In this document: positions 5,843 through 35,381 of the stretch, piece by piece | Position numbering within the stretch: position 1 is the stretch's first letter | How the letters are laid out: each line of letters starts with the position of its first letter | From: Bugula neritina | Taxonomy: Eukaryota > Animalia > Bryozoa | DNA length: 64,000 nucleotides | Reading direction: 5' to 3' | NCBI GenBank assembly: GCA_964035545.1 | Contig: OZ037770.1 | Span: forward strand, 12,016,442-12,080,441 | Translations under genes and position numbers: made by a program | Notes under the pieces: generated by a model | Databases searched by the model: none | Seen by the model: only the letters and a program-made list of their open reading frames with translations | What the model was told of the DNA's origin: nothing

Positions 5843-6140
5843 CAGTTTATGCAGAACTCACAACATCTAAGCTGCATCATGAATTGTGTGAAAACTTGCC
5901 CTGAGACCAACAAGCAATCTCCTCACCTATTCAATAAAACATTTCCATCTGCAGATGGAAGAGTGTTCCAAGTTTTTAATCATCTCTTTTCCTGCAAAAG
6001 TTGAAATGGTGCAAAATTATATAATATCATAAATTTTTATTTGTAATTAGATTGTACATTTTTTCGTGCATACATGTATTTAACAAAGAATTTCTCAAAT
6101 AAAAAACTGTATATACTTAGTCTCATATACTGCATTACAT

Positions 6141-6385
6141 TTTTTCGTATTCTCACCTATCTCCGCTTTGTTCTGTTTGGTTAGCGGGAAAACTCACGCA
6201 AGTTTATAGTCACTATCCCTGTGAGAAACCCCTGATGGAAAGGATTTTTGTTATATAGAGCGGGCTAAGCTGCTAAGGACTTGTTTAGATGAGGTACAAA
6301 AGCAATTATGACTGGATGTTTTGAACCCATGACTTCGTGTTCACAAAGCAAATGTTTTAACCCCTAGACCACGGCTGCTCCACTC
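6141..6385 (-). mobile_element. tRNA-derived SINE, apparently full-length copy with TSD
   Basis: Minus strand begins GGAGCAGCCGTGGTCTAGGGG (A-box-like), has GGTTCAAAAC (B-box-like) and ends in a short A tail. Flanked by 14-bp direct repeat ATACTGCATTACAT (6127-6140, 6386-6399). Related copies occur at 10.9 and 11.7 kb. Confidence 0.75.
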
Positions 6386-6555
6386 ATACTGCATTACATG
6401 TTTAATATAATTTGTGTTTCAAAATTTTATTTTGATTTTATATCTCAACACCTTTTCATAAATGATGCTTCTTTAAATTTTTTTGCATATAGAGAGTCAC
6501 GAATTGCTTTGTATAGTTTGTCATCAGTTTTCTGGCAATTTCATAACACCTAGGG

Positions 6556-6562
6556 TATATAT
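6556..6562 (+). promoter_or_regulatory. Putative TATA box of the mucin-like gene
   Basis: TATATAT about 60 bp upstream of the ATG at 6619. Confidence 0.35.
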
Positions 6563-6618
6563 TGAAGCTTGAAATAGTGGCAGGAACATTTTGAATGCAG
6601 TTTTTCTAAAGAGCAACA

Positions 6619-8861
6619 ATGAACATTATTCTGCCGATACTTGCTGCTTGCATTTGGATGCAGGCCACTCAAGCCAGGCCATCTGTAAGTGTTTCTATTA
6701 CATATGCTGGTGTCATAAACACACTACGATTTGCTAAGGAATAGTAAAATTCCTAATCAAACTTTAATGAAAATGCTAAAACGTTATGTCATTGTTGATA
6801 TTTCAAATAAACAATTTTTTCACAAAAGATCTTATATTTACTTAAAGATTTAATTAGACATTTAAAATATTGCAACTAAAAGTAGTCATTAAAATGTAAA
6901 GAATGTTTTAATCACTGATGGTAACGGTTGAATTTGCTGTGTTGCAACTGCTTTTTTACAAAAATAAAATGATGATTTAATAGTACAAACCATGCATATG
7001 TCCATGTTTGTTGACTATGTGTGAGCAGAAAATACAGAAGTAGGTACTAAACAATCATGTTTTTAGAACTTACACATAAGTGTGCTGAATAATCAGGTTC
7101 TTAGAGCCCAGCAATTGTACTGATGGTCATAAATAAGTTAGGAACAAAATAAAACCATGTGGAGTTATATATTACTGAACTAACTGAACAATAGTTAGCT
7201 AGTAAGTGTTGGCTTTTTTTTATGCTATGACAGCATAATATGTTTGCATAAATTAAAACTTTTAGTATTTTTTTATAAAAAAATTCTAATTAAGTATAAT
7301 TATACTAATCTATTACATACATACAAATTATAATTTTGAAAGCTTAAAAGTCCAAATACTGGCAATTGAAACTTTTTCAGCTGCGACAGCAGAATTAGGC
7401 ATATTTTTATAATAAAAATGATGAAGGTCTATAAGTACATGTTCTGTAAAAGCTTTACTAGTTTTGAAGTAATAGCTATAACAACTAAAATCCAGCGACC
7501 ATGAATGAAGCGAATTTCAATCAAACTGCTTCCTGTTTCAGGATCGACACAACCAATGCATGGAAATCTGCACATTTATTTGTCCAGAAGAAGATGAGCA
7601 CAGTATGGAAGAGCATCAGGGGATGACTACGTTTGCAGACGAAGCGGCACTCACTCGCACTACCAAGAGCTATTGGTCACCAATAATCACCGAGTCTACT
7701 TTCTACAATTATTTTTTTTCTGACTCAACAAACGCCAGTACCTCGACTACTGACAGTACCCCTACTACCACAAGTGATCCTACTACTTCCAATGTCCCTA
7801 CTACCACCAATGTTCCTACTACCACCAATGTTCCTACTACCACCAATGTCCCTACTACCACCAATGTCCCTACTACTACCACCAATGTCCCTACCGCCAC
7901 CAATGCCCCGACTACCGCCCCCTATGTCCCTACTACTACCACTAGTGCTCCTGTTACTGCCAATATCCCTACTACCGCCACCAATGTCCGTTCTGCCAAC
8001 ACCTATCTCCCTATTATCTACATCAATGTTCCTACTACTACCACCACCAATGCCCCTATTATCGCCAACAATGTCCCTACTACCACCACCAACGCCCCTA
8101 CTACCACCACCAATGTCTCTACTACCACCAATGTTCCTACTACCACCACCAATGTTCCTACTACTACCACCAATGTTCCTACTACCGCCAATGTTCCTAC
8201 TACTACCACCACCAACGCCCCTACTACCACCACCAATGTCTCTACTACCACCAATGTTCCTACTACCACCACCAATGTTCCTACTACTACCACCAATGTT
8301 CCTACTACCGCCAATGTTCCTACTACTACCACCACCAATGCCCCTATTATCGCCAACAATGTCCCTACTACCACCACCAATTTACCTACTACCACCACCA
8401 ATGCCCCTACTACCACCACCAATTTACCTACTACCACCACCAATTTACCTACTACCACCACCAATGTTCCTACTACCACCACCAATGTCCCTGCTACCAC
8501 CACCAATGTCCCTACTACCACAACCAATGTCCCTACCACCAATGTTCCTACTACCACCAATGTCTCTACCACCACCAATGTCTCTACTACCACCAATGTT
8601 CCTACTACTACCACCAATGTTCCTACTACCACCAATGTTCCTACTACCACCAATGTTCCTACTACTACCACCACCAATGCCCATACTACCACCACCGATG
8701 CCCCTACTACCACCAACAATGTTCCTACCGTTGGACTATCAGAGAGTATCATTGAAAGAAAGAAAAGGCATGCTATAATAGTAGCGGAAAGTGATTCAGG
8801 CAATGATGAAGAACACCATGGCTGTAGAATGAGCTGCACGAATACTTGCAGTCATAAATAA
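6619..8861 (+). CDS. Secreted Thr/Pro-rich mucin-like precursor with terminal CxxxCxxxC motifs, 461 aa, 2 exons
   Basis: Exon 1 (6619-6684) encodes signal peptide MNIILPILAACIWMQATQA-RPS and ends at GTAAGT. Exon 2 (7542-8861) is in frame: DRHNQCMEICTFIC..., about 310 aa of TTTNVP-type repeats, RKKR at 8757-8768, then HAIIV...CRMSCTNTCSHK-stop. Confidence 0.85.
7760..8730 (+). repeat. Coding minisatellite (AATGTYCCTACTACCACC units) encoding the PTS domain
   Basis: 18-24 bp units, with a higher-order duplicated block around 8090-8330. Confidence 0.95.
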
Positions 8862-10603
8862 CTACTTTCTAGAAAATTGAACATTTTCTTTTGAAATTTA
8901 TTTAGGAAAAACAACTTCGAACATGTTTTTATTTGTGTTAAGTTACCAGTTTAATTTAAATCATTATAATATTTTACTCATAAAGTCTTTGAACAAGCCT
9001 TTTTTACGAATAAAAGCTGAATCTAATAAAATAATCAAAAGGGAAATGGTGTCTAAACAATTATTTTAAAGCTCACATAAGTTGATAATTTTCATTTCTG
9101 ATACAAAGGGTTGCTTTCAATTTCGTTAACATAAAATTTTGCTTATGTGTCTTAAAAAATGCAATGTTTCGATTTTGTGATATATCTTTAAGATCTTAAA
9201 TAAAAAAGTTAAACTAGGTATTATAATTTATTATTATTTTGCTTACAATAAAAATAATTTCAATCTATAACTTCTAATTTTGCTGTATAACAGACTTTAT
9301 AAGCTGCAAGCATAGAAAAATATTAATTTTATGTTAAATAGATTTCAAAATTTATTTCTTACAAAATTAGTCATACAATTTGTCAGCCATAGCCATATTA
9401 CGTAACTTGAAATCATAACAAAGCCAATGTAGGCTACATCGCATCATGTGATAACCTCACTTCTACGCAACTTTTTGCCTCATCATTTGAGAGTGCTAGA
9501 TGCAAACACATGCATTTCAATTTTAGAGCTGTTTGATTTCATATTATTTTGCTTTCTAATTTTGAAATTATTAAATTTAAAAGTAGAAATTTAAATAGAG
9601 CGATATATATGAAAATTTATATATTATATTAACATAGTATGCTTCTTCAATTAGCGCTATAGAATAAGAAATTTAGAAAAGGGGTTTTCTACTCCTAAAC
9701 TTTAGTTCAGTTAGAGTTGTTAGTTTAGTAAAATCTACTAGGCAATTTATTGTTGCAAGTGAACTGACCTTTTCTAATGAGAAACTCTTTTTTTAATAAT
9801 TATTTAATAAAAGCTATAGCAGGTAAATTTCCTACCTGAATATGCCAAGAGACCTGATATCTGCACCTTAATATTTGCATCTGCACTTTTATCTGCATAT
9901 TTTGTAATAAGGACATCTGTGCTCTACTATCTGATCCTACTCTATTTAAACACAGCTTAGCACAACTGGCTCCTAGATAGATGATCAAACTACCCACAAA
10001 TAATTAGGAGAAGACAAGTCTAAAATGCAGAGAGCTTTTCAAAAAAGGACAAACAACTCCTTGTCTTTGATCATGTTTTTATTTGTATTAAGTTACCAGT
10101 TATAGTGTAACTAGTTGATAGTTACTAGTTTAGTAAAAATTACTGGCAATTTGTTGTTGCAAGTGAACTGACCTTTTCGAATGAGAAACTCTTTATTCAA
10201 TGATTATTTAATAAAAGCTATAGCAGATAAATTTTCTACTTGAATATGCAAAAATACCTGATATTTGCACAATTGCTTAGGATACACACTGTTATATAAT
10301 GTAAGATGATATAATAATAATAATAGTTATGGCAATAAAAAATAAAATAATGCAAATAGTTTTTTCCATTTACTGATTTATGTAGAATAATAACAACTTG
10401 AAAGAAAAAATTCTTGTGGTTAAAAGATGCAATAATGAAGTATTTATGAAGCACATAGAATTAATTTTTTACTTTTTATATATAATTCAACAAGCTTTAA
10501 CTAGTTTTCTTAATGACCTAAGCATAGAATAAGTATAGAGTAGGTATATAATAAGTATAGAGTAGGTGTAAAGAAGGTGTAGAGTAAGTGCATAGAGTAA
10601 GTG

Positions 10604-13398: not shown

Positions 13399-13600
13399 CA
13401 AGCCTGTGGACCAGCCTGTGGACCAGCCTGTGGACCAGCCTGTGGACCAGCGTGTGGAATAGCCTGTGGACCGGCCTGTGGACCAACCTGTGGACCAACC
13501 TGTAGATCAACCTGTGGACCAGCCTGTAGACTAGCCTGTGAACCAGCCTGTAGACTAGCCTGTGGACCAACCTGTGGACCAGCCTGCGGACCAGCCTGTG
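13399..13600. repeat. 12-bp minisatellite (AGCCTGTGGACC)n, about 17 units
   Basis: Head-to-tail tandem units with no spacers, about 550 bp upstream of the sulfatase ATG. Confidence 0.95.
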
Positions 13601-14145
13601 TTACAACTACTGAACCGCTGCTGATGTTTCATAAACTTATGCAACTCAATTAAAAGTTGTATTTCAATAGCTTAGGCTGCATGGTATGAATTACCTAAAA
13701 CTCTGCATTTACAAAATATGAATTGTGTGAACTAATAATTATTATGCATTCAATTATGTTTATATAGGTATTGTTATGCTGTGTTTGAGCTGCTCATCAT
13801 AGTAATTGTGAATTAGTTCAACTTCCACATAATCTCAAAGCTAACAATGTTGTTATTTAGTTCATCCTGATATAATCCTATTATGTAGAGGTGTAACCTA
13901 TCACCACCCTAAGCATAATATTACCGATGCATTGCAAAAAATGCCAAACATTACAAATAAATGATGCGGCTGAAACAAGATACAATAGTTTGCATTTCAA
14001 CGTGATTACAAATCCATTAATCAAATTGTTGTCGTAATTAAGATAAATTACTCGCATGGAATGGTGATGTAAGAACGCAGGCAGTGACTATCACATATAA
14101 ACAGCCTATCACAGATTGTTTAACTTCAGTAAGTCAGTTGCCTGC

Positions 14146-15307
14146 ATGATGAACGCACATTACCTGCTCTGGTTTTGTATCGTCTTGGCTTGCTTCACTG
14201 CTTATACTCAAAGTTTGCATAAGGACAGGAGATTCCTTGGACAAAACTGGCGTGGCAACAGACGGCGCTCCGTTGGGAAGCTGTCAGCTGGTAGAACACA
14301 GTCTAGCAATTCAAAGACAGCTCAGTTCACTAAAAATGGAGTTAAACCAAATATTATATTTATCATGGCTGACGACCTGGGTATGTTTTGAAATTGCTTA
14401 ATGGTTTCATTATTTGACCCATTTGACTGATGTCTTTGTAAACTCTGGTAATTACAGTCAATGTATTCATAAAAACGCGTGCATAGAATGACAAGCAAGA
14501 TACTTTTTACTTAAAATGCTGTTAAGTATTTATAAATTACATAAGAATATTTAAAATAAATAAATATAGGCTATGAAATGTATCACAAACATTTTTTAGC
14601 TGTTTTTTAGATTTATTAAACTAAATTTTTAATAAATAGATCTTGGTAAATTACATTAATGGTTAATTTCTACATTAACTAAAGCTGTGGTTAAGAATAA
14701 TATTTTTACTGCGTGGAATGAATGAATCATTGCATGTAGAAAATGCAATCATTATATAGGCGAGACTTTTACATGGTAAAGTGATGTGCAGTAAAACATT
14801 GTTGTGGGAATATAGAGGCATAAAAGTGTTTACTCATTGCAGGATTATTGGTCACAAGAAGCTTAATCAAAACCACTGAGGTGCTTTTTCTACCATTTTT
14901 TAATAACTTTAAATTCTTATTTCTTACTAACACTGATTTTTTAAGCAAACAACTTAAGCATCTAGTCGCAAGTCATTTCAAGTATATAATTAGCATTTAA
15001 GTTAACACTGCAGTTGTTCTTTTGTTACTGGTTATAATAAAATTTTGCCATTAAACACACACACAGCACACACACACACGCACACGCACACGCACACGCA
15101 CACGCACACGCACACGCACACGCACACGCACACGCACACGCACACGCACACGCACACTGCACACTGCACACTGCACACTGCACACTGCACACTGCACACT
15201 GCACACTGCACACTGCACTGCACACTGCACACTGCACACTGCACACTGCACACTGCACACTGCACACTGCACACTGCACACTGCACACTGCACACTGCAC
15301 ACTGCAC

Positions 15308-15379
<72 letters not shown>

Positions 15380-18300
15380 CACGCGCACATTTGATTAATA
15401 TTTGTTGATTTTATGTTAACTGTTACTTTAAAGGTGGTTTAGTACTAAGCTGAATGGCTAATCTATAGATGTTAAAAATTTGGTAAATGGAGTTGAAGCA
15501 ATTAAAATTTTAACACAAATGATGAAAACCTAACCGCTTAAGCCATTATTAAGATAAACTTCTTTTCTTCAAATACTTGTAATTCACATTCAAATTTTTG
15601 CAGGTTTACAAAAATCTTTCTTATAAACTTAGTGAATTTAGCCGTCCTATAATTTGAACAAATTTCTGTCAATTTTTGATCTTTTGATTTTTGAAGCGTG
15701 TGCATATTTTCAAAATTACATTTTCTAGAGGCCTATGACCTAATAATTTTGGTAATTTGGCAATTAGAAATATATTACTGTTTCAATAACTCTAAGTTTT
15801 GGAGAGTAGATGTGGTCCAGCAATTAAAGCTAGTAAACATTAGGCGAGTGGTTATAAAGCTCAAACACTAGCAGTAATGTTAAAAAGAGCGTAATTTCTT
15901 TTGTCGCTTTAATAAGGACCTTTCCATTAGGGGTTCTTGCAGGGATGGTGACTATAAACTTGTGTGAGTTTTGTAGTCCTACGTTTTGGCAGTTTTGTAA
16001 ATTTTTGTAGCTCAATTAAACTTAGGCAACACCCATTGTTAAACTAGCAGAGGTCATTGATATTTAGATTAATGTGATTTATTTTATAGAAATTTCATTT
16101 CCACAGTTTATAGCCATAGCTGATCATAAATTTACCTGTCACATGTATCTGTAACTGATGCTACGGTGAAAATACGCTTGTGCTTAAATTTAAAGCCAAT
16201 GCATGCCATTTATGGATCCTAGCACAGAGTTTTCTTAGCAAACCTCTACAAACCTCCCATAACTTATACAACAAGCTTCTCTTCTTTGCATGAATTAACT
16301 TGCTAATAGATTATTAATTTTTTAATAACTTATCGCTTAAGTCTGAGCAAAGCCTGAAGACTAAAGTTTTATGTAGATGAAAAGGTTGCTGTATGATTAC
16401 GTTGGGGAACCACTCGACTTTTTCAAAATCCTCATCTAGATGGAACTCTAATTCTGCACTAGGGTTGCTGCTTTAGACAATCATTTATTGAATTAAACCC
16501 GGATTATCTCTCATTGTTTGATAGTATCAATAGAAAACCGTTTCCCAAAGCATCATTAACAGGATTGCAGTTAATAATGTATGTAATAAACTGTAATGGC
16601 TATTTTTGTTACACACCTGTCAGTTGAAAGAGTAGATAACCTTAGACACCTGTTATGTAATTAATGTTCCATATTATTATTCCATCCATCATGTGACTGC
16701 AGACAATATCACAAGTAGTTAACCTCATTGAAATCACCAACCATGTCTAAAAAATCATGCATGACTTTACCACAGATCGGTCATTTATTCGTTCTATAAA
16801 TAGTCATTGAAATGAGTCATGTAAATTGACTGTTTCCACCTGCAGGTTGGAATGATGTAGGCTTCCACAACAGACTTGTGAATACGCCCAATATTGATTG
16901 GTTGGCTAGGAATGGTATAGAGCTGACAGATGTGCATGCTTCACCACTATGCTCTCCGTGAGTACCCTGGAAGTATTCTTTTATTTCTGCTGTAAGCCTT
17001 ATTTTATAGTCTGCCTTTAGTGGAAAAGAATTACTACAATGATGCTGGTATTGAACTTCGTTACTGTTGCTAGGTAATCTTTACAATAAAACTTTATAGC
17101 AAGCAACGAATGAAAACCTTACAATTTTCCTCTTGGTTTTTATTTTTCTGTTCTCAATGGAGTGTTTTTGTAACTGGTAAAAGGCTAAATTGTTTTTAAG
17201 GTATTTTAAGATTAAAATTCAACCATTAAGTTTACCTAGGTTGCATCAGCATCACACAGTCTGGAACTACAAATTATCATAGTAAATTATCGTGGTACAT
17301 CAAGCTAAAAAAGAATTATCACACACCGGTAGCTTGCCTTTCAATCAACACAACTGAAAATGACATTTAGCTGTTTTAATGTTTTTAATTAAAAATTGAA
17401 TACAAGTACTTTTAAAACTGTATTATTTAAACTATAGTTTTATAAAAACAATTTATATTGTGTATATGCAACAACAATGAGCATTCACTTTGAGTTCATA
17501 TTGCGTTATTTGATTACAGTTAATATTGTGCATACTAATGACAATACTTATACATAATTATCAATATATCTGAGTATCAAGGTATGAGTCGCCATCACCA
17601 ATATTTCTAACTTTCCCACAGCTTATTTGTTTTGCATTTACTAAGCTGCCTTCCATTTAGGTAAAGGGGTAAAGAACTTTCAATATAGCCCAAGTTCACC
17701 AACTTTTATACTAAATTTTGGCTTAGGTGCCAGATTGAAATTCCATAACTGCTTTTGTTACTTTTTGAATCTATAACACAAGCTTCTTTCTATTAATACA
17801 ATCTCTTGCATTTACAGCCCTTTAGTAATATACTTGACCTTTGGTCGCAGCTTTACTTGCATCACTTTACAATATCTTAGAGTACACAGGCTATGTTATA
17901 TATATAGTCACTCTGCTTTAAGCTTTACCTTACCTTTGCCCCAACAAGTATCTTTGATAGCAATTCATTGTAAAACTATTGAAATCAAGTAATTTGACAT
18001 AAACTTTGGTTCCATTGCTTCGAAATCCATACATTTTCAAGTTTCGAATAGATTTTTCATGTTTAGGAGCAGTTGCATCGAATGAGACCACAAATATAGA
18101 AGTTGATGCAAAACAGCAACTACATATTTATTCAAAGCAGAGTAAACACAGTGATTATCTATAACATATTATTGCCCTTAGAGTAATTGACTTTATAGAC
18201 TAATCTTTAATTATATTACATAGAAAATGTTAACCTTTTAATAATAAACTTATATGTTTGGTTCTTAGGCCTACAGACAAGTTGTGCCCACAGCTCTGTC

Positions 18301-20566
18301 TTAGGTGTTAAATATGTGGCAAAATTATGCGCTATAGTTGTTGTTATATATAAGCAAAATAATTTGACAGTTTGACATGGTAGAGTTAGAGTGTAATAAC
18401 TCAGGACCTAAGATGTTATAGGCCAAGAGAAAATACTATAAAGTGAAATGCCAGTAAAGATTCACCGAAACATCAGCCTAGTTCACTGCGATCACTTTTG
18501 AATTACACCTGCTTATGCAAAATAAATCTAGTTATGCAGTTAAATCTTTAAACACTGCTAGGGTTAGGTACGTGGGAGGATTTAGACTAACAGTGTAGGA
18601 TATAATGTTATGTTGCTATGTAAAGTAAGCTGTGTGTAATTGCTGTGGCTTTATAACAAGGGATATTCTCTATCTTATAAACATAATCCCAAGATAACAC
18701 CATGACCTTAATACTGCAATTAACATTACCCATAACCCGGTCAAGTTGGTAACTGCTCGTAATGTTAGGTTTACCTAGTATAGTCCTTGTGGTGTGATGG
18801 TATCACGCCTGGGTGCAAGCCCTGGGTTCAGGGTTTGAATTCCAGTGCAGCAAAAGTTTTATAGCTAATGAATCTACTTGTAGATCTCGGGCTTCTCTAC
18901 TCACAGGCAAATATCCCTCAAACAATGGATTGCAGGTAAGTTTCTCTCAGATAGTTTGTAGTACACTTGCTAGGGTTGGTAAGAACTTTATTGCTGATTA
19001 GTGTCTTCACTGAGTTGGAAGAATATTTATTATCAAAACTAACCAAGGGCTTTCTATTTGATAAAGCATTATGCAAGGGCTAAAACACTTTATGCAAGAA
19101 CGTATATAAAGTAAGGGGCATTTAGAAAACGATATAAATTTTTTTGATACAGCTTTTTTCTAGCTTTTCTTTGATTATATTTATCTCTATTGACAGAATA
19201 ACAATATGTTCTCTCATTGACATAACGAAATTCACAACTTGACTTAACAGCTAAATTGAATTTCTTTGGTAACAACATTTTAGTTCCGTTAAAAGAAAAA
19301 AAATATGTTGAAGGATTTTGTCATTTCAGCAACTTGTGATGTTGGAACAAAGTAAAAGTTGTCTTCCCTTGGAACATAAAATTTTACCACAATATCTCAA
19401 AGAAGCTGGATATACGACTAAGATGGTAGGCAAGTGAGTTTTCTGACGTTCAAATATTCTTGATAGCTATAAAAACTATAATATACTTCTTGTATATGAT
19501 AACAAATTGTATACACTATATTTTGTTATACATATAGTATAATTAGGTACATAATCTCTACTATGTGCTATCCACTGGATCATATTATGATATTATAATA
19601 TACTATAATATACCACATTATATAAATTCTATATTGCATACATTATATGTGATGCACTATAGACTATGAGTTATATAGTATGTGATAATGTATATATTAC
19701 ATAATACACACTATGGGATACATAAGGTGGTTATAATATGTACCCTGCATTTATTCTATATATACTAGAGACCATACACTATTAACTTCTATATATATTA
19801 TTTACAGCATGTACAATAAGCTAAGTGCTTTAGAAGTTGTAATATATACGATATTGTATACTCTTTATTAAATACATGGTGTACTGTTTATTATATTACA
19901 TGTTAGTGATATATAATATACACTATATTATGCTAAATGCAATCAATATAATTTAACTTAAAGGAGTTTTATTAAACAGTACTTTCTCATTTTTCAGAGT
20001 TACATAAATTTGGTTGCCAAAATTTGAAATATTCTCATAGTAACATAACATAACTCATATAAAAACAATATTATTTACTATTTATTTTAAAAACCCATGA
20101 GAACAAAGTTACAGCAATTAATGCATGAACTTGTTATAGTTTACACTTGAGTCTCCTATATCTACATTCATGTTATATAACTATTGTTTTAGATGGCATT
20201 TAGGAAGTTGCAGCAAAAGATGTCTTCCCACACACAGAGGTTTTGACGAGTTTAGGGGAATTCTTGAGAACCAGGCCAGCTACTTCAATTGGAGTATGAC
20301 TTAAAAGATTAAATACTTTCTTATCAAAAATTAAAATACATAATCATTCAGCTAATTATCTATCGCAGTGACACTAAAGAGCTTTATTAAGCTAAACTAA
20401 AGCTAAACTAAACTTTATTAAACTAAAGCTTTATTAAACTATTTACAAATTTATCCATGGGAGCATTTTATTCAAAGCAATGGAAATGCAGTGATCGCGT
20501 TAGCTATGGGTGAAATATTTTATGTAGGTTATACCAGTCGTACATATTTACTTATCTATCGGTAAT

Positions 20567-20612
<46 letters not shown>

Positions 20613-23600
20613 AAACACACACACACACAAACACACACACAAACACACACACAAACACACACACAAACACACACACAAACGCACACACAAACGCACACAC
20701 AAACGCACACACAAACGCACACACAAACGCACACACAAACGCACACACAAACACGCACACAAACACGCACACACACACACTCGCATCACACGCATCATTC
20801 ACACATCTCAATCTGTCTACAGAGGTGTACATATATATTACACTTTCAAAAACAGTTTTTTACACAGGAATTAATATTTTAGCATATCTGGGTGTGATGA
20901 ACAGGATGGAGGGTGATGAGCCGTCAACAAGAAACATTGGCACTCATCTTACAGTAAGTTAGTTGTCATGGTAACATATAAAACATACTCTTTAACTTCC
21001 TTCTCATTTAATGCATATAATCTACTTGTGTGGTAGAATTGCCCACCCAAGTAGATTATAACTTCCTTTTACGAATTTGTGTAATAAGATAAATGATTGT
21101 ACTATGTGAATAAAAGCACATTTTTAGTGCAATAGATATATCAACAGTTTGTTAGTTTTTGGTAAAGTTGAAATTTGGTACTCCTTATATTCATCTAATA
21201 ATATAGTATTATGAGCATTACTAGATAAAAGTGTGCAGTTATAGATTATGACGAGAGCTATTAAGTCTTATTGTGCTTATATTATTGTACAAAATCCACT
21301 CAAATCTATGTAAAATTATACAGAAGTTTTGTATTTATTTCTATTTTACTTTCACCATAATTTTGTATATGGTTTGTATACGGTTTGATGCAAAATATGT
21401 TTTCTTTTGTCAAAAATTGAATATATTAACATTCTAATGTTATTCAAAAGATATTTAACTGTGTTTTAAGGACTGTGTATAAAGCCTAATTATTTTTATA
21501 GCCAAAACAATTCAACTAAGCTTTTGGAGTTGCTAATATAGATAAATAAAATATTTATAACTATAGGTTGATCATAACTGTATAGTCTAACTAACAATTG
21601 TTCTTTTTAACAGCAATAGGAAAATATTTTCAATATTTCATAGATTCAGCATCAGCTAGACACTGAAGAAATGATTCTGGCTCACAACAAAAACAAGTCA
21701 CCTTTATTCATGTATATATCCCCAATGGCAGTACATCAACCATTAGAGGTGAATATAAAACTGTATTTGAGAGTTATGCTCCTATTTAAGAGTTGTGCTA
21801 TTTATGTGGAAATGCAAGCTGTCACAGGATTTTTAATTTAACAAAAATTGTGATGTTTATTAACAGCCTTTAATAAAAATGGTATATGTAAACTTTGATT
21901 AAAACTAGATTTATTTATATCATCAGATATTGTTTGTTTTTCAAAGTTACATAACAGCAGCAGCTGACTTTTGAACTGGTAATTTGTTACATCTTATGAC
22001 AACATAACAAGTATATAAACTGCAAAATTAATATATTTTATCAAAATCATTTTTATTGTAGTTTAGAAATTATGTATTTGCATACATACACAGTGCATCA
22101 CAAGATTTACTATGAAAACATTTTAACAAGTGCTGAGAATTTTCTTTTTATATACTTATCCTTGGATCCACTAACTCTTGCCACCAACACAACACTAAAG
22201 AGACATAACATGTTTGTCTGTTTTTGTGACAATTTTCTTGAAGATTTACTTTTTACTGAAACATTAAAACTTGAAAAGACATGTGCTTTACTCCTTATTC
22301 ACAATTTCTTTTTCTTCCTCAGTTATAGGCTATAATTGAGAAACAATAAAAGCAATGTATGTTTCATTACTTTAAAAATAGTATCAGATAAGGATAAAGC
22401 CCACATTTTATTCAAATTTGTGTTAGTATTTAATACAGAGTATAGCAAAGAGCACTAACCATGTTTTAGAAGTAGTAATCTCTTCTTAAATATTCTTTTT
22501 AGGTGACCAATGACTTGTTCAACAGACATAGCTTTTTAAATTCTAACAACCCTCGAGAAAACCAGAGAAGAAAATTTTTAGGTACGGTCGTTTCACTTCA
22601 TATAGCTGTGATAAATATGTTACCCCATAATATATAATTTTTATAAATATGTAAATTGCAACTATAATAATAGTTGAAATTTACATACATTATTTATTAG
22701 TATCTATTTTATATTTTAGTCTTTATTTTATTATATTTTGCATTTATTTATTACAATAATGTTTTATCGAACCTGTTTTATTTAAATATCGCATAGAGTG
22801 CGCATTTTGTTATTAAACGAAGCTTTAGCTACTGAATGTTTGCCAAAATTGAACCAAATTTTTATACACAATATAGCTGTTATCCCCTATATCACTGTAT
22901 ATTGGCCGTATAGAGCTTTGAGTGGTATATCATTCTCTAAGAGTGGATAGAACTATGCTCACACGTACATATGTACATATTATACACATATAAGTACGCA
23001 CATACATACCTGTACTATAAGTACATGTTACTCCACTATACATCAGGTTTAGTAGCTGCAGTAGACGATCTTGTTGGAGCCACCATTCGTGCACTGAAGA
23101 AAATCAAACAATACAAAAACTCTATCATAGTCTTCACATCAGACGTAAGTTATGTTTTTTAGTATTATATTACCTTCTCTTGTAAAGTTTTTTGTAATCA
23201 GAATTTTGGTACTCCATATGCTAGCCGAGGCTAACTTTTGATTTAATCATTGTATAACGAAAGAAATGTCTTTCTGATTCTGATACTATATGTATGCTAG
23301 CAAACACTAAACTTATATTAGAAATAATCAAGAAGACTTATGTTAATAGAATGGTGGAGCATCCGGAGATTTGAATTTCCGAGCTCCTTTTACGTTTCAA
23401 AGTTTTGGTAACAACTACCCGCTACGAGGAGGGAAGACATCTTTTTATGAAGGAGGTACAAAATCCCCAACCATTTTTTTCAAGCCAGGCCTTCCCAACT
23501 CTGTTAGGGGCTCTAAAAGGGACTTCCTCATGCATATAACAGACTGGATGCCCACACTTCTAGACCTGGCTGGTTTGCCAATCAGAATGAGTAAGCAACG

Positions 23601-24599
23601 TTATATAACAAGTATAATATATATATAAATATGTCATTACACACACTATACTATTCTATAAAACACAGGGGACTTCTATATACTATATAATATAATGCAA
23701 TACAAGATATGTATATCATATGACATGTGGCATAAAATATAAAATATCTTTATAGTTCTATAATGTAATATATATATTTTTTTATCTTAGAATGTAGCAT
23801 TACATATAATAACGCATCATAAGTTATATATTATGTATATAAAATGTATTGAATATACAGTAATATATACCCAATATTACGTACTGTGCTATATATTATA
23901 TATCACACATTGTATCTTTCATATTATATGATGCATGTATATAATATTACATTATCATAATATAATTCGTGAAACATAATATGCTAAATAATGTTATATA
24001 TTGAGTAATATAAATTTTGATTACATAAAGCACCAAAGTACAAACCAAATCTATCCCAAACCAAACCAAGCCAACATATTCTGTAAGAAAAATAACGCCA
24101 TGAAGTTTATTTTCCTTTCAAGTAAATGTTATATGTATTTCTGTTCTCAGTTTTCAGTGTCAAGATTTTTAGATCGGTTGAAATGATTAAGTCTACTAAA
24201 TATTATTTGTAGAACAATTTATAGCAAATAGAATTGTTCTGTAGATAATAAGATAGATGGTATAAGTCAAAGCAAAAACTTAAAGACTAGCTACAAGTCA
24301 AGAAACAAGTATTCAGTGAGATCTGAGCAGCTGATTGGTTTAACTGATTACACCTCACCTCAACTGACATCTGTGTGTAGTGACGCCGACACCGCTTACA
24401 GGTGCTTGTTTATGACTATCTGTTGCTACTGCTGCTACTACTACTGCTGCTACTACTGCTGCTGTTGTTACTACTATTGCTACTGATACTACTGCTGCTG
24501 CTACTGCTACTACTGCTACTACTGCTACTACTGCTACTGCTACTACTGCTGCTACTACTACTGCTGCTGCTACTGCTACTACTGCTACTACTGCTACTG

Positions 24600-24652
<53 letters not shown>

Positions 24653-26183
24653 GCGACTACTACTGTTACTACTACTGCTGCTACTACTACTACTACTATT
24701 ACTATATACTGCGACTACTACTGTTACTACTACTGCTACTGCTACTACTACTGCTACTACTACTACTACTGCTTCTACTGCCACTACAATAGTAATAAAA
24801 GTGACTAAGTATTAAAAGAGCAATTGCATACATGATATCATAAAATAGAATGAAATAAAAAACCGGTGTTACTACATAATCTCACTTAAGGTGAGAATTG
24901 TCTGCAAAACATTATATAAATTTCTGTACATTTAATGCATTTAAACTATTGTTAAAAAATGTATAGCAAAGTTGGTATGTCTCATTTCTAATAGTATTAA
25001 AGTGATTTTCAAATAGTTCTGTGCAGCTAAAACATTCTCACTGTCTTTTTAATGCATTTATTGAAAAGATGGAGAGATTGGAAACTGATATATGGAAACG
25101 TTGCCTCAGGGGTGGTACCAGAAGTCGCTGGCATGTGGGTGGAGCCAATAGAAAACTCAAATGTCAGAGCAATAACTGGAGACTCGTGTATGAGAAGAGA
25201 CAGTACCGGAAATATGGTTGCTCGGTGTCTTTTTAACCTTAAAGGTAGTTTTCTGGCAAACTCTGCATGTTCCTATCACCTCGAATGAGTATATACAGAT
25301 GAACTACATTAGAATGGTTTACGTTAACTTATGGTTGGGGGTTTCATTTAATGCAACTGTTTCCCAAACTCGAATAAAAAATCTATTTGCATAATGCAAA
25401 GCAATGAGAACGTAGAGATAAATGACTAAAATTTTTTTCTTAAAATCTGTTGCAGCGTCTCAAGTTTGTAAAATATATTATTGAAAAAAAATCAACATGG
25501 GCTTATAGTAGCCATTCCTGTAAAACAAATAATGAAAAGGTTTTTAGGTGGGCTGAAGACTAAGTCTTGTTGTCTATCGCCAGAAAGAGACAATGATAGC
25601 TAAAAGCTTTTCGTATAGCATCACCAATGGCTCTTACTTAAATTTTGAACTAATGACCTTGTGTTTACTAAGCCAGTACTATAACCACTGGAACAATGGT
25701 AGCTCCACAACAATGTTCCATTATAATAATCAAAATAATATTGATGTATATATAGCGCTTTTTTCATATCCTTTCAATACCCTTCTAAAAACATACCTAT
25801 AAGCACAAATAACTAGCTCCAATGAATCATTTACAATTAAAATAATATGAGGCAATGCAGTGATTTGTAAATACAACTTAATACTTAAAAAGTGCTAATA
25901 TGTCATTATCTTTTTGATTACTTTTATTGTTTTGTTTATTGTTTCAGATGACCCACTTGAGCAGAGAAACTTGTTTGATGCAAAACCAGGCATCGTTCGA
26001 CGACTACTAAAAAAAATTAACCATTTTAAAAGAATTAGTGTAGAAAATGTATTCGCCATTCCAATCGGAGTGACTCCAAGGACTACTAGAAGTTTTGGCT
26101 CCTACACGGTTCCTCGGTTTGATTTCTGCGCTCCTGTGATTGACTTTCCTTTACAGCCTCGCAATGCTAGTTGCAATACTTAA
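14146..26183 (+). CDS. Arylsulfatase B/I/J-like formylglycine-dependent sulfatase, 588 aa, 13 exons
   Basis: Exons 14146-14380, 16846-16957, 18884-18935, 19330-19433, 20193-20293, 20883-20953, 21644-21748, 22503-22581, 23047-23144, 23350-23590, 24245-24401, 25069-25244, 25948-26183 (1767 nt, open frame). Signal peptide; [20 protein letters not shown]; TPNID; [13 protein letters not shown] (FGly motif, split by intron 2); VGKWHLG; PTHRGFD; AVHQPL; FTSDNGG; [12 protein letters not shown]; HITDWMPTL; [14 protein letters not shown] at 26260-26265. Confidence 0.93.
15055..15389. repeat. Compound microsatellite (CACACG)n-(CACACTG)n-(CA)n in sulfatase intron 1
   Basis: Read directly from sequence. 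Confidence 0.97.
18783..18852 (+). mobile_element. Degenerate tRNA-like / SINE head in sulfatase intron 2
   Basis: TGGTGTGATGG (A-box-like) and GGTTTGAATTCC (B-box-like) at tRNA-like spacing. No intact cloverleaf seen. Confidence 0.35.
20572..20780. repeat. CA-rich compound microsatellite (CA)n/(CACACAAACGCA)n
   Basis: Read directly from sequence. Confidence 0.96.
24420..24790. repeat. (CTA/CTG)n trinucleotide tract in sulfatase intron 11
   Basis: Begins about 20 bp after the exon-11 donor; source of the poly-L and poly-S ORFs. Confidence 0.97.
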
Positions 26184-34057: not shown

Positions 34058-34293
<236 letters not shown>

Positions 34294-35381
34294 CTTGATT
34301 AAATTAAAGCACTAAGATAATGCAGGGTTTTTGTAATTGACAATAATGAATCAAATATATCTAAAGCAAAACAATCATACCAAATGGATCATGTTTGGTA
34401 AAACTGAAATAAGTAGAATTCTGAATGTTGCTTATAACATACTATAGTACATACAACTGCTAGTATATATGATAATTTAAGAATGCTGAATCAATAAATA
34501 AAGCTGTTTTGATTAATTTTTCATGCTTTGAAAAAATCTTCTATTTCAATGATAGTCATTCATTACCATTTGCTTTGTAAACCTGCAAACATTACAAGGC
34601 AGTAATAACTATTTTTTCGAATTATTAGACATTCATTTAAATTCACTTTTACAAAACTTGATAAACATGTGTTAAATACTTCTTTAAAAAATATTTTGAA
34701 AGTTTACAAAATGTATACTTGTATATAACTCTGTATCAAATGTGTTGATCACTAAAGTTACATATGATATTTGTAAAGCTCTCTTTGCTTCTTCCAATCA
34801 TAAAGTTCATCATTTCAGATTAAAGAACCACGTCAACAAACTAATGGTTAGATTGATTTGCTTTTATCAACAACTCTAATGGTTTTATTTCTCTATCATG
34901 TTGCTGCTTTAATTTTCTATTTAAAAATGAAATGATTGCAATCAATATATTTCAAAAAAGAAATAATTAAAAGCAGCATCTTTTGTGACACTTATTATAA
35001 TAGCAATATGACACTCAAGATATAATATAATTTTAGCTGCTATATAGCAATATTTAATATAACTGATTGATTCACTGTTATTAAAATTTTCAACAGTTTA
35101 ATTTTTCTTTAATGTTGTTTGCTTAATTTAAGATTTTGAAATTGGATTCTTGCAATCAATATAAAGTATTTAAATATAAATAATATATTTCAAAAGGAAT
35201 AAATCAAAAGCAGGATATTTGTGCCACACTATTAAATATATCTAAAGTCAAGAATAATTACATTTGCAATGTATAAGAAGGAAAATAAAGTATTGCTTGA
35301 TTAGTTATGTAATATCTGGTTTAGCTATAAACAGCTTTCCCTCTGCTATATAAAATTACTTGGCTAGCTGATAGAAAAAAA

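Follow-up and report, generated by a model that had tools for sequence, protein, structure and literature searches.

Secreted mucin-like threads are usually assembled via large, well-known end domains, and a locus of the bryozoan Bugula neritina raises the question of what two short cysteine-bearing ends may do in such a protein. The locus lies in a 64-kb stretch of contig OZ037770.1 (GenBank assembly GCA_964035545.1, positions 12,016,442 to 12,080,441), called the window here, which is AT-rich and eukaryotic (G+C ~30%) and from whose first letter all positions are counted. A predicted two-exon gene at 6619-8861 would encode a small secreted mucin in which the assembly apparatus appears reduced to two 9-residue Cys triplets with His/acid patches and one convertase site. 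Its reading frame is coding and constrained, and we are dealing with a real gene under purifying selection at its termini, because two diverged contigs recovered from a metagenome keep the frame, the stop codon, and an AATAAA block downstream, and comparison with them gives the termini a ratio of nonsynonymous to synonymous substitution rates (dN/dS, or omega) of 0.18. For the two ends we propose, at a probability of roughly 0.4, that they together form one split disulfide module, which would close the chain into a ring that a convertase then opens.

Protein architecture

Exon 1 and exon 2 were translated separately and protein features were read on the exon-2 product; a full-length residue number equals the exon-2 residue number plus 22, the length of the signal peptide. 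The features on which the argument turns are as follows.

6619..6684 (+), exon 1: start codon and predicted 22-residue hydrophobic signal peptide, then the donor GTAAGT
6685..7541 (+), predicted intron of 857 nucleotides, GTAAGT ... ttcctgtttcag, from the splice consensus in the sequence
7542..8861 (+), exon 2: 439 unbroken codons and TAA (8859-8861), holding the whole mature protein
7557..7583 (+), N-terminal Cys triplet, C-MEI-C-TFI-C (C28, C32, C36)
7584..7622 (+), N-terminal acidic/His patch PEEDEHSMEEHQG, on the inner side of the N-terminal triplet; a single substitution in the relatives, M to R
7623..7763 (+), nonrepetitive linker with a conserved aromatic stretch (SYWSPIITESTFY.YFF)
7764..8729 (+), mucin-type Thr/Pro/Asn repeat array of ~43-46 units of 6-8 residues, the commonest being NVPTTTT
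8757..8768 (+), RKKR (exon-2 residues 406-409), furin-type consensus (R-X-K/R-R) and sole dibasic site; putative cleavage site
8769..8858 (+), C-terminal segment after RKKR, 30 residues, starting HAIIVA
8805..8822 (+), C-terminal acidic/His patch DEEHHG, preceding the C-terminal triplet; DEDHRG in the relatives
8823..8849 (+), C-terminal Cys triplet, C-RMS-C-TNT-C (C450, C454, C458)

All six Cys of the mature protein fall within the two CxxxCxxxC triplets, at exon-2 residues 6/10/14 and 428/432/436 (28/32/36 and 450/454/458 in full-length numbering), and one more, residue 11, lies inside the signal peptide. The order of Cys and patch is mirrored between the ends, the triplet being followed by PEEDEHSMEEHQG at the N-terminal end and preceded by DEEHHG at the C-terminal end. 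Six Cys placed at random in 439 positions would form two such triplets with a probability of ~1e-8. A preliminary description of this DNA, made without database searches, had already given these six as the only mature Cys and the patches in mirror order, together with a signal peptide in a two-exon layout, a Thr/Pro spacer of ~310 residues, and RKKR before a 30-residue tail. Translation agrees with each of these points: the 22-residue hydrophobic leader, the GTAAGT donor, and the 439-codon frame are all read in the sequence, the repeat region measures 322 residues, and no second dibasic site accompanies RKKR.

Between the ends, a tandem repeat with a 21-nucleotide unit runs for 46.6 copies (7789-8728), with higher-order duplications within the array, and the 322-residue region consists of 47% Thr, 15% Asn, 13% Pro, and 11% Val. 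From this Pro/Thr/Ser (PTS) type of composition, O-glycosylation would be the expected modification of the repeats, because the exon-2 product holds only five N-glycosylation sequons, four of them in the repeats. A count of codon-position variation among repeat units was dropped, as the units had been chosen by translation and the count was biased.

Outside simple-sequence tracts, CxxxCxxxC occurs ~10 times in the six frames of the whole window. The tracts themselves (13405-13650, 15025-15400, 20548-20832, 24402-24815, and 34068-34300) comprise a 12-nucleotide unit read as ACGP, TG/CA-rich arrays, and CTx/ACx triplet runs; they give spurious Cys- and Thr-rich open frames and are the source of most CxxxCxxxC matches in the window. 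One sequence, CIMNCVKTCPE (5873-5905, in the open reading frame 5849-6004, +), resembles the N-terminal CMEICTFICPE and was considered as a relic or alternative exon. We rejected it as a chance match, on the grounds that it stands just past the stop codon of the upstream receptor gene and before the AATAAA of that gene, probably in its 3' untranslated region, that it comes without a signal peptide, and that it shows no DNA similarity to exon 2.

Coding status and purifying selection

A HMMER scan of the N-terminal 74 residues against 1.84 billion proteins yielded one significant relative, a 42-residue fragment from JGI metagenome sample 3300003318, whose 90% cluster contains a second member of 124 residues. 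The contigs of the two relatives, L033 and L034 of the same sample, align to the window over a region that starts at 7559, includes the stop codon, and extends ~800 nucleotides past it, and their reading frames are open to the same stop, with products of 212 and 124 residues. Compared with the window, both show 0.21-0.24 substitutions per site in the 3' flank besides numerous insertions and deletions, and they differ from each other there by ~7.6%. The Nei-Gojobori method was applied to 59 N-terminal and 43 C-terminal nonrepetitive codons, comparing the window with each contig. The termini show a dS of 0.36-0.45, a dN of 0.064-0.083, and an omega of 0.18 (Fisher P values of 7e-6 and 2e-6 for two comparisons that are not independent), the lowest dN/dS, 0.11, being that of the 43 C-terminal codons. 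This is therefore an orphan gene whose coding status is shown by dN/dS against a cryptic relative from a metagenome.

Both relatives retain C32, C36, C450, C454, and C458, as well as RKKR and the HAIIVA start of the tail; the sixth Cys, C28, lies outside their coverage. The preliminary description would have been contradicted by homologs lacking the Cys spacing or RKKR, and the visible spacing and RKKR are kept in both, a weak pass at a protein divergence of this size. The tail after RKKR has 28 residues in the relatives, with five substitutions and a 2-residue deletion relative to the window, and residues 33-49 of the three-sequence alignment, within the linker, are identical in all three.

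The repeat arrays of the relatives comprise ~17 and ~3 units. Short-read assemblies underestimate repeat arrays of this kind (PMC6352337), and the short arrays may likewise be a result of assembly collapse. The differences between the two contigs suggest that the sample contains either two cryptic species or a pair of diverged alleles, or that repeats collapsed in assembly. In addition, we observe that both contigs begin at the identical base (c/ATGGAG, window 7559) though they represent distinct haplotypes or species; a library cut at CATG sites, a break in the assembly, or a different structure further upstream could account for this shared start. A degenerate pattern for the signal peptide of exon 1 matched nothing in the metagenome, and a pattern spanning the acceptor matched one contig only (L035), which is unrelated.

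Proposed pairing of the two cysteine triplets

Each end carries three Cys, an odd number, and the six in total suffice for exactly three bridges; as read from the sequence, the three Cys of one end could not all be satisfied within that end. AlphaFold was run on the exon-2 product as a single sequence, and the model is disordered throughout except for two strands, at residues 5-13 and 429-437, that is, at the triplets (block means of the predicted local distance difference test [pLDDT], ~58-65 and ~74, respectively). In the natural 124-residue variant, modeled from the three-sequence alignment, strands again appear at both triplets with pLDDT values of <50, and a helix is predicted in the linker at low confidence. 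The triplets are modeled as paired with each other, because DSSP assigns strands only to hydrogen-bonded partners. We regard this pairing as a hint, not a result.

It had been proposed that the ends form a three-disulfide helical pair, on the argument that a helix brings Cys at i, i+4, and i+8 to the same face, and a structure prediction for the N- and C-terminal peptides had been suggested as a check. The pairing half of that proposal finds weak support in the models, where the two triplets are the only strands in both runs, and in the pattern of the 6C alpha-hairpinins discussed below; the helical half is not supported, since AlphaFold gives strands, at moderate confidence in one run and low in the other, and the residues between the Cys of each triplet are beta-branched or polar. 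The ends probably have strand rather than helix geometry. The helical assumption is also unneeded, because i, i+4, and i+8 share one face of a strand as they do of a helix.

In an antiparallel register (i + j = 442 in exon-2 numbering), the Cys face would also pair F12 with M430 and E8 with N434, and the inner patches would give E16:H426, E17:H425, and H20:D422. Inside the triplets, the sole substitutions between the window and L033 are I13M and R429T, which stand opposite each other in this register, and in the C-terminal patch H426R keeps a positive charge opposite E16. These pairings are anecdotal readings of the sequence.

A precedent for such an arrangement is found in plants. The 6C alpha-hairpinins follow the pattern CX3CX3C-X(4-20)-CX3CX3C with no extra Cys, their antiparallel arms being bridged by disulfides, and in nigellin-1.1 (PDB 2NB2) the hairpin has been solved with its six Cys in disulfide bridges (PMC11591084). 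The Cys spacing of the arms is identical in the bryozoan protein, where the six Cys are likewise the only ones. However, the loop here comprises 413 residues of mucin repeats rather than 4-20, and the motif as a whole is therefore absent; the hairpinins are helix-loop-helix peptides whereas strands are predicted here (pLDDT ~58-74 in one run and <50 in the other), and they are small defense peptides from another kingdom without sequence similarity to our protein. Because of the 413-residue loop, the precedent supports the suggestion that the ends may work like a hairpinin, not that the protein is one.

Comparison with known systems

In gene and protein layout and in evolutionary behavior, the Drosophila glue proteins Sgs1 and Sgs3 appear closest, a likeness that is architectural only. 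Common features are a signal peptide, two exons, and a lengthy Thr/Pro array between conserved nonrepetitive ends, as well as a Thr content of ~40-46%, repeat numbers that are volatile between close relatives, and fast evolution that makes homologs hard to find (PMC6352337). The Sgs ends are longer (~50-120 residues), and neither symmetric Cys triplets nor a conserved furin site is reported for them (PMC6352337). No Sgs protein was among the matches to the termini in the word and HMMER searches, in which no direct comparison with Sgs was made.

Cnidarian minicollagens likewise carry CX3C-spaced modules at both ends of an extended, nonglobular secreted protein, and their N- and C-terminal modules can react with each other. 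Their cysteine-rich domain (CRD) has six Cys in the pattern CX3CX3CX3CX3CC and folds autonomously with three internal disulfides (PMC4863159), whereas the bryozoan ends, with three Cys each and no CC, cannot be self-contained. The core also differs, being mucin-like (0.9% Gly, NVPTTTT-type repeats) instead of Gly-X-Y collagen with polyproline, and no convertase site before the C-terminal CRD is mentioned in the description consulted (PMC4863159). The minicollagen analogy drawn in the preliminary description is therefore loose: three Cys per end stand against six, the terminal CC is missing, and there is no collagen (PMC4863159).

The gel-forming mucins MUC2, MUC5AC, and MUC5B have a PTS repeat domain flanked by Cys-bearing ends, which in their case mediate disulfide assembly in the secretory pathway. 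Our protein has none of their vWD, C8, TIL, CysD, or CTCK domains (Pfam-A, E values up to 10), and its end motifs of 9 residues contrast with domains of several hundred residues. In precursors of the insulin type, processing takes place at two sites, and the Cys patterns are CX11C (B chain) and CCX3CX8C (A chain). An analogy with them had been raised as well, and furin-processed, disulfide-linked two-chain secreted proteins, insulin- and relaxin-like precursors among them, do share a convertase site between two Cys-bearing segments that could stay disulfide-linked; the analogy fails on the single convertase site, RKKR being the sole dibasic site and none following the N-terminal segment, and the Cys framework is another one and Pfam gives no insulin match. 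The small Tim proteins with twin CX3C motifs differ in that no zf-Tim10/DDP match was obtained in Pfam and the predicted signal peptide would direct the product to the secretory pathway, not to the mitochondrial intermembrane space.

Proposed ring closure and opening, and alternative explanations

In the mechanism that we favor, the two triplets would be stapled by three disulfides, C6-C436, C10-C432, and C14-C428 in exon-2 numbering (C28-C458, C32-C454, and C36-C450 in the full-length protein). The inner patches would face each other as Glu-His pairs (E16:H426 and E17:H425) and a His-Asp pair (H20:D422), which may make docking sensitive to pH or cations. In its leading version the closure is intramolecular and gives a ring with a mucin loop of ~410 residues. 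A furin-type convertase would then cut after RKKR in the late secretory pathway and open the ring into a linear mucin chain, with the 30-residue C-terminal peptide disulfide-bound to its N terminus as a second chain. As read from the sequence, cleavage at RKKR would detach from the mucin chain any link made via the C-terminal triplet, and the end product of intra- and intermolecular pairing alike would be a mucin chain bearing the 30-residue peptide on its N-terminal triplet. Should pairing of the ends be real, they would constitute a minimal, easily synthesized module to close, link, or cap a glycoprotein thread, and a natural short form of 124 residues seems to exist, which would offer a tractable model. 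The arrangement may also bear on the adhesive, cuticle, or mucus of Bugula as a fouling bryozoan.

Several observations weigh against ring closure. At a protein divergence of 6-8%, the five visible Cys and RKKR would be kept by chance in ~70% of cases, and since both contigs start at the base matching 7559, exon 1, the acceptor, and the first Cys lie outside the coverage of the relatives. Both AlphaFold models are poor overall, with mean pLDDT values of 35-39 from one or three sequences; AlphaFold is prone to bring cysteines together, and it predicts strands rather than the helices of the hairpinin precedent. The placement of I13M and R429T at opposite positions has a chance probability of ~1/6. 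For a coil of 400 residues we estimate an end-to-end effective concentration of ~0.1 mM, which is not above plausible levels in the endoplasmic reticulum (ER), and intermolecular products are equally plausible on concentration grounds. Finally, the N-terminal triplet is translated long before its partner, an order that favors N-N pairing between chains.

The strongest alternative, possible and yet on the doubtful side, is that of an intermolecular cross-linker, in which the triplets bridge different molecules (N-C head to tail, or N-N and C-C) into chains or a network for an adhesive, a cuticle, or a mucus gel. The odd Cys count of each end and the absence of other mature Cys suit it equally, as does the co-translational order just mentioned, and the AlphaFold pairing fits an N-C contact between two chains as well as one within a chain. 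Known systems offer parallels: the N- and C-terminal CRDs of minicollagens link intermolecularly in all combinations (PMC4863159), and fibrous matrices held together by disulfide bridges have been proposed for the Thr-rich Sgs glue proteins, whose conserved ends bear Cys (PMC6352337). Three Cys per end are, however, far fewer than in known polymerizing modules, and the convertase site before the C-terminal triplet, RKKR being kept in the window and in both relatives, would cut all head-to-tail and C-C links and leave N-linked dimers or monomers. It is because RKKR cleavage severs links made through the C-terminal triplet that we rank ring closure and opening slightly above a structural polymer, and we hold this ranking loosely, because the estimated ~0.1 mM does not clearly beat ER concentrations. 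A parallel may be drawn with von Willebrand factor, whose multimerization depends on pH and His and is linked to furin.

The fullest form of ring closure is more speculative, and we consider it unlikely. It would be a topologically closed "ring mucin," in which a six-Cys ladder or hairpin is split by ~410 O-glycosylated residues, the ends are stapled in the ER, and a conserved convertase site opens the ring into two chains, the C-terminal peptide perhaps capping the reactive N-terminal triplet in a pH-sensitive manner. If true, the ring mucin would represent a new way to control the assembly or unfolding of a secreted polymer.

The purifying selection on the tail could also be read in terms of a peptide precursor, in which cleavage at RKKR releases the active product, a 30-residue peptide that would act as a signal or an antimicrobial or bind metal and may be a disulfide dimer, while the mucin serves as its carrier or pro-region and the N-terminal triplet has nothing to do with the peptide. 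The sole dibasic site stands directly before the conserved nonrepetitive tail, and dN/dS is at its lowest (0.11) in the 43 codons of the C-terminal end, as such a precursor would have it. We nevertheless consider this quite improbable, as an O-glycosylation domain of 320 residues is unusual for a pro-region, a free peptide with three Cys leaves one unpaired, and five substitutions with a 2-residue deletion over 30 residues are seen at shallow divergence. Moreover, the N-terminal triplet and its mirrored patch become a coincidence, a second triplet in 439 residues being improbable.

Very unlikely, in our view, is the explanation that each Cys triplet with its His/Glu/Asp patch chelates Zn, Cu, or another cation, either as cargo or as a reversible cross-link of the kind made by the His-rich ends of mussel byssal proteins. 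Acidic residues and His are indeed abundant at both ends (8 and 3, respectively, in the first 27 residues; 5 and 4 in the last 30). Against this, the ER normally oxidizes the Cys of secreted proteins, the relatives have Arg in place of one His of the C-terminal patch, and the Pfam scan found no known metal-site motif. Hardly credible, lastly, is a nonfunctional or wrong model, with the frame a by-product of a triplet-multiple tandem repeat or exon 1 misassigned and the product not secreted: the repeats do hold several frames open, and exon 1 and the first Cys are beyond the coverage of the relatives, but the nonrepetitive termini have a dN/dS of 0.18 in the stated frame (P ~1e-5), the stop codon and the downstream AATAAA block are conserved, a single signal-peptide exon candidate is in the right phase with a consensus donor, and translation lacking exon 1 would start at the first in-frame ATG (7560) and yield an implausible cytosolic Thr-rich protein missing its first Cys.

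Family searches and copy number

Searches for a described family gave none, in agreement with the earlier statement that the family was not recognized. No Pfam-A family matched the exon-2 product in hmmscan at E values up to 10, which also confirms the absence of vWD, CysD, and CTCK domains noted previously. A search with the terminal segments had been recommended as well, and it matched no described family: neither terminus matched a PDB sequence, the N- and C-terminal regions had no match in word searches among proteins of 241-768 residues, and the N-terminal 74 residues retrieved only the JGI fragment in a word search among proteins of 41-130 residues. Two queries of the ESM Atlas returned only viral G-glycoprotein clusters at 0.77-0.80, a likeness reflecting composition, and no family; the literal peptide strings were absent from 8.4 million papers. 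The product is plausibly a small secreted mucin with Cys-bearing ends, for which no family was found and the modeled pairing of the ends is plausible.

Within the 216-Mb genome of the animal itself, protein searches for paralogs with both termini matched only this gene, which is thus single-copy. A DNA pattern for CxxxCxxxCPE had 17 matches in the genome compared to 6 for a control pattern, none of the 17 being in a related frame; one genomic match ending in ...FICPE (L044) was considered as a relative and rejected, as it has no mucin or acidic context. The repeat region, for its part, matches >100 other Thr/Pro-rich open frames in the genome, some of >1,000 residues, with arrays of the TTQAP and APTTTT types. 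Such frames are seen, for example, at C6:13.866-13.870 Mb, C2:24.27-24.30 Mb, and C3:13.313-13.317 Mb. The terminal triplets are absent from all Thr-rich frames retrieved, which are a subset of the >100.

The locus thus reads as a lineage-restricted gene for a putative small secreted mucin-type O-glycoprotein. The term orphan denotes here that relatives are undetectable, not that the gene is proven new; orthologs in other genera may be undetectable because the termini change by 10-15% at a dS of ~0.4.

Gene model and genomic neighborhood

The start codon at 6619 stands in the context caacaATGa, and the predicted signal peptide would likely be cleaved after TQA, at residue 19. Exon 1 ends in the consensus donor TCT/GTAAGT, and the pyrimidine-rich acceptor of exon 2 reads ttcctgtttcag, ending in CAG, and then G. 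Open frames in phase 0 that begin with ATG and end at a donor were sought over the 1.5 kb upstream, and of the 8 combinations obtained only those starting at 6619 have a hydrophobic core like that of a signal peptide; the consensus GTAAGT donor is found only at the 6684 end. The two-exon structure with the predicted splice 6684/7542 is the best gene model on this sequence. The one sequencing run matching 6400-7760 consists there of a single genomic contig, identical to the window and without a splice joint. Three candidate signals flank it.

6556..6563 (+), TATA-like box TATATATT, ~55 nucleotides 5' of the start codon; putative, read from the sequence
9009-9014 (+), second AATAAA, kept in two of the three sequences (window, L033, and L034)
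9025..9030 (+), AATAAA, candidate poly(A) signal 164 nucleotides past the stop codon, inside a 15-nucleotide block invariant in the window, L033, and L034

Between the 3' end of the upstream gene and the promoter of this gene lies an interspersed repeat of ~190-220 bp resembling a short interspersed element (6189-6381). Across the genome this repeat yields 45 scored matches, at 70-86% identity, and a first look gives >3,400 candidates. The minus strand of its 3' part suggests derivation from a tRNA, although ARAGORN calls none. Downstream, an open frame at 14116-14391 (+) has a signal-peptide-like start and an end resembling the sulfatase N-terminal motif, and the neighboring gene on that side probably has it as its first exon.

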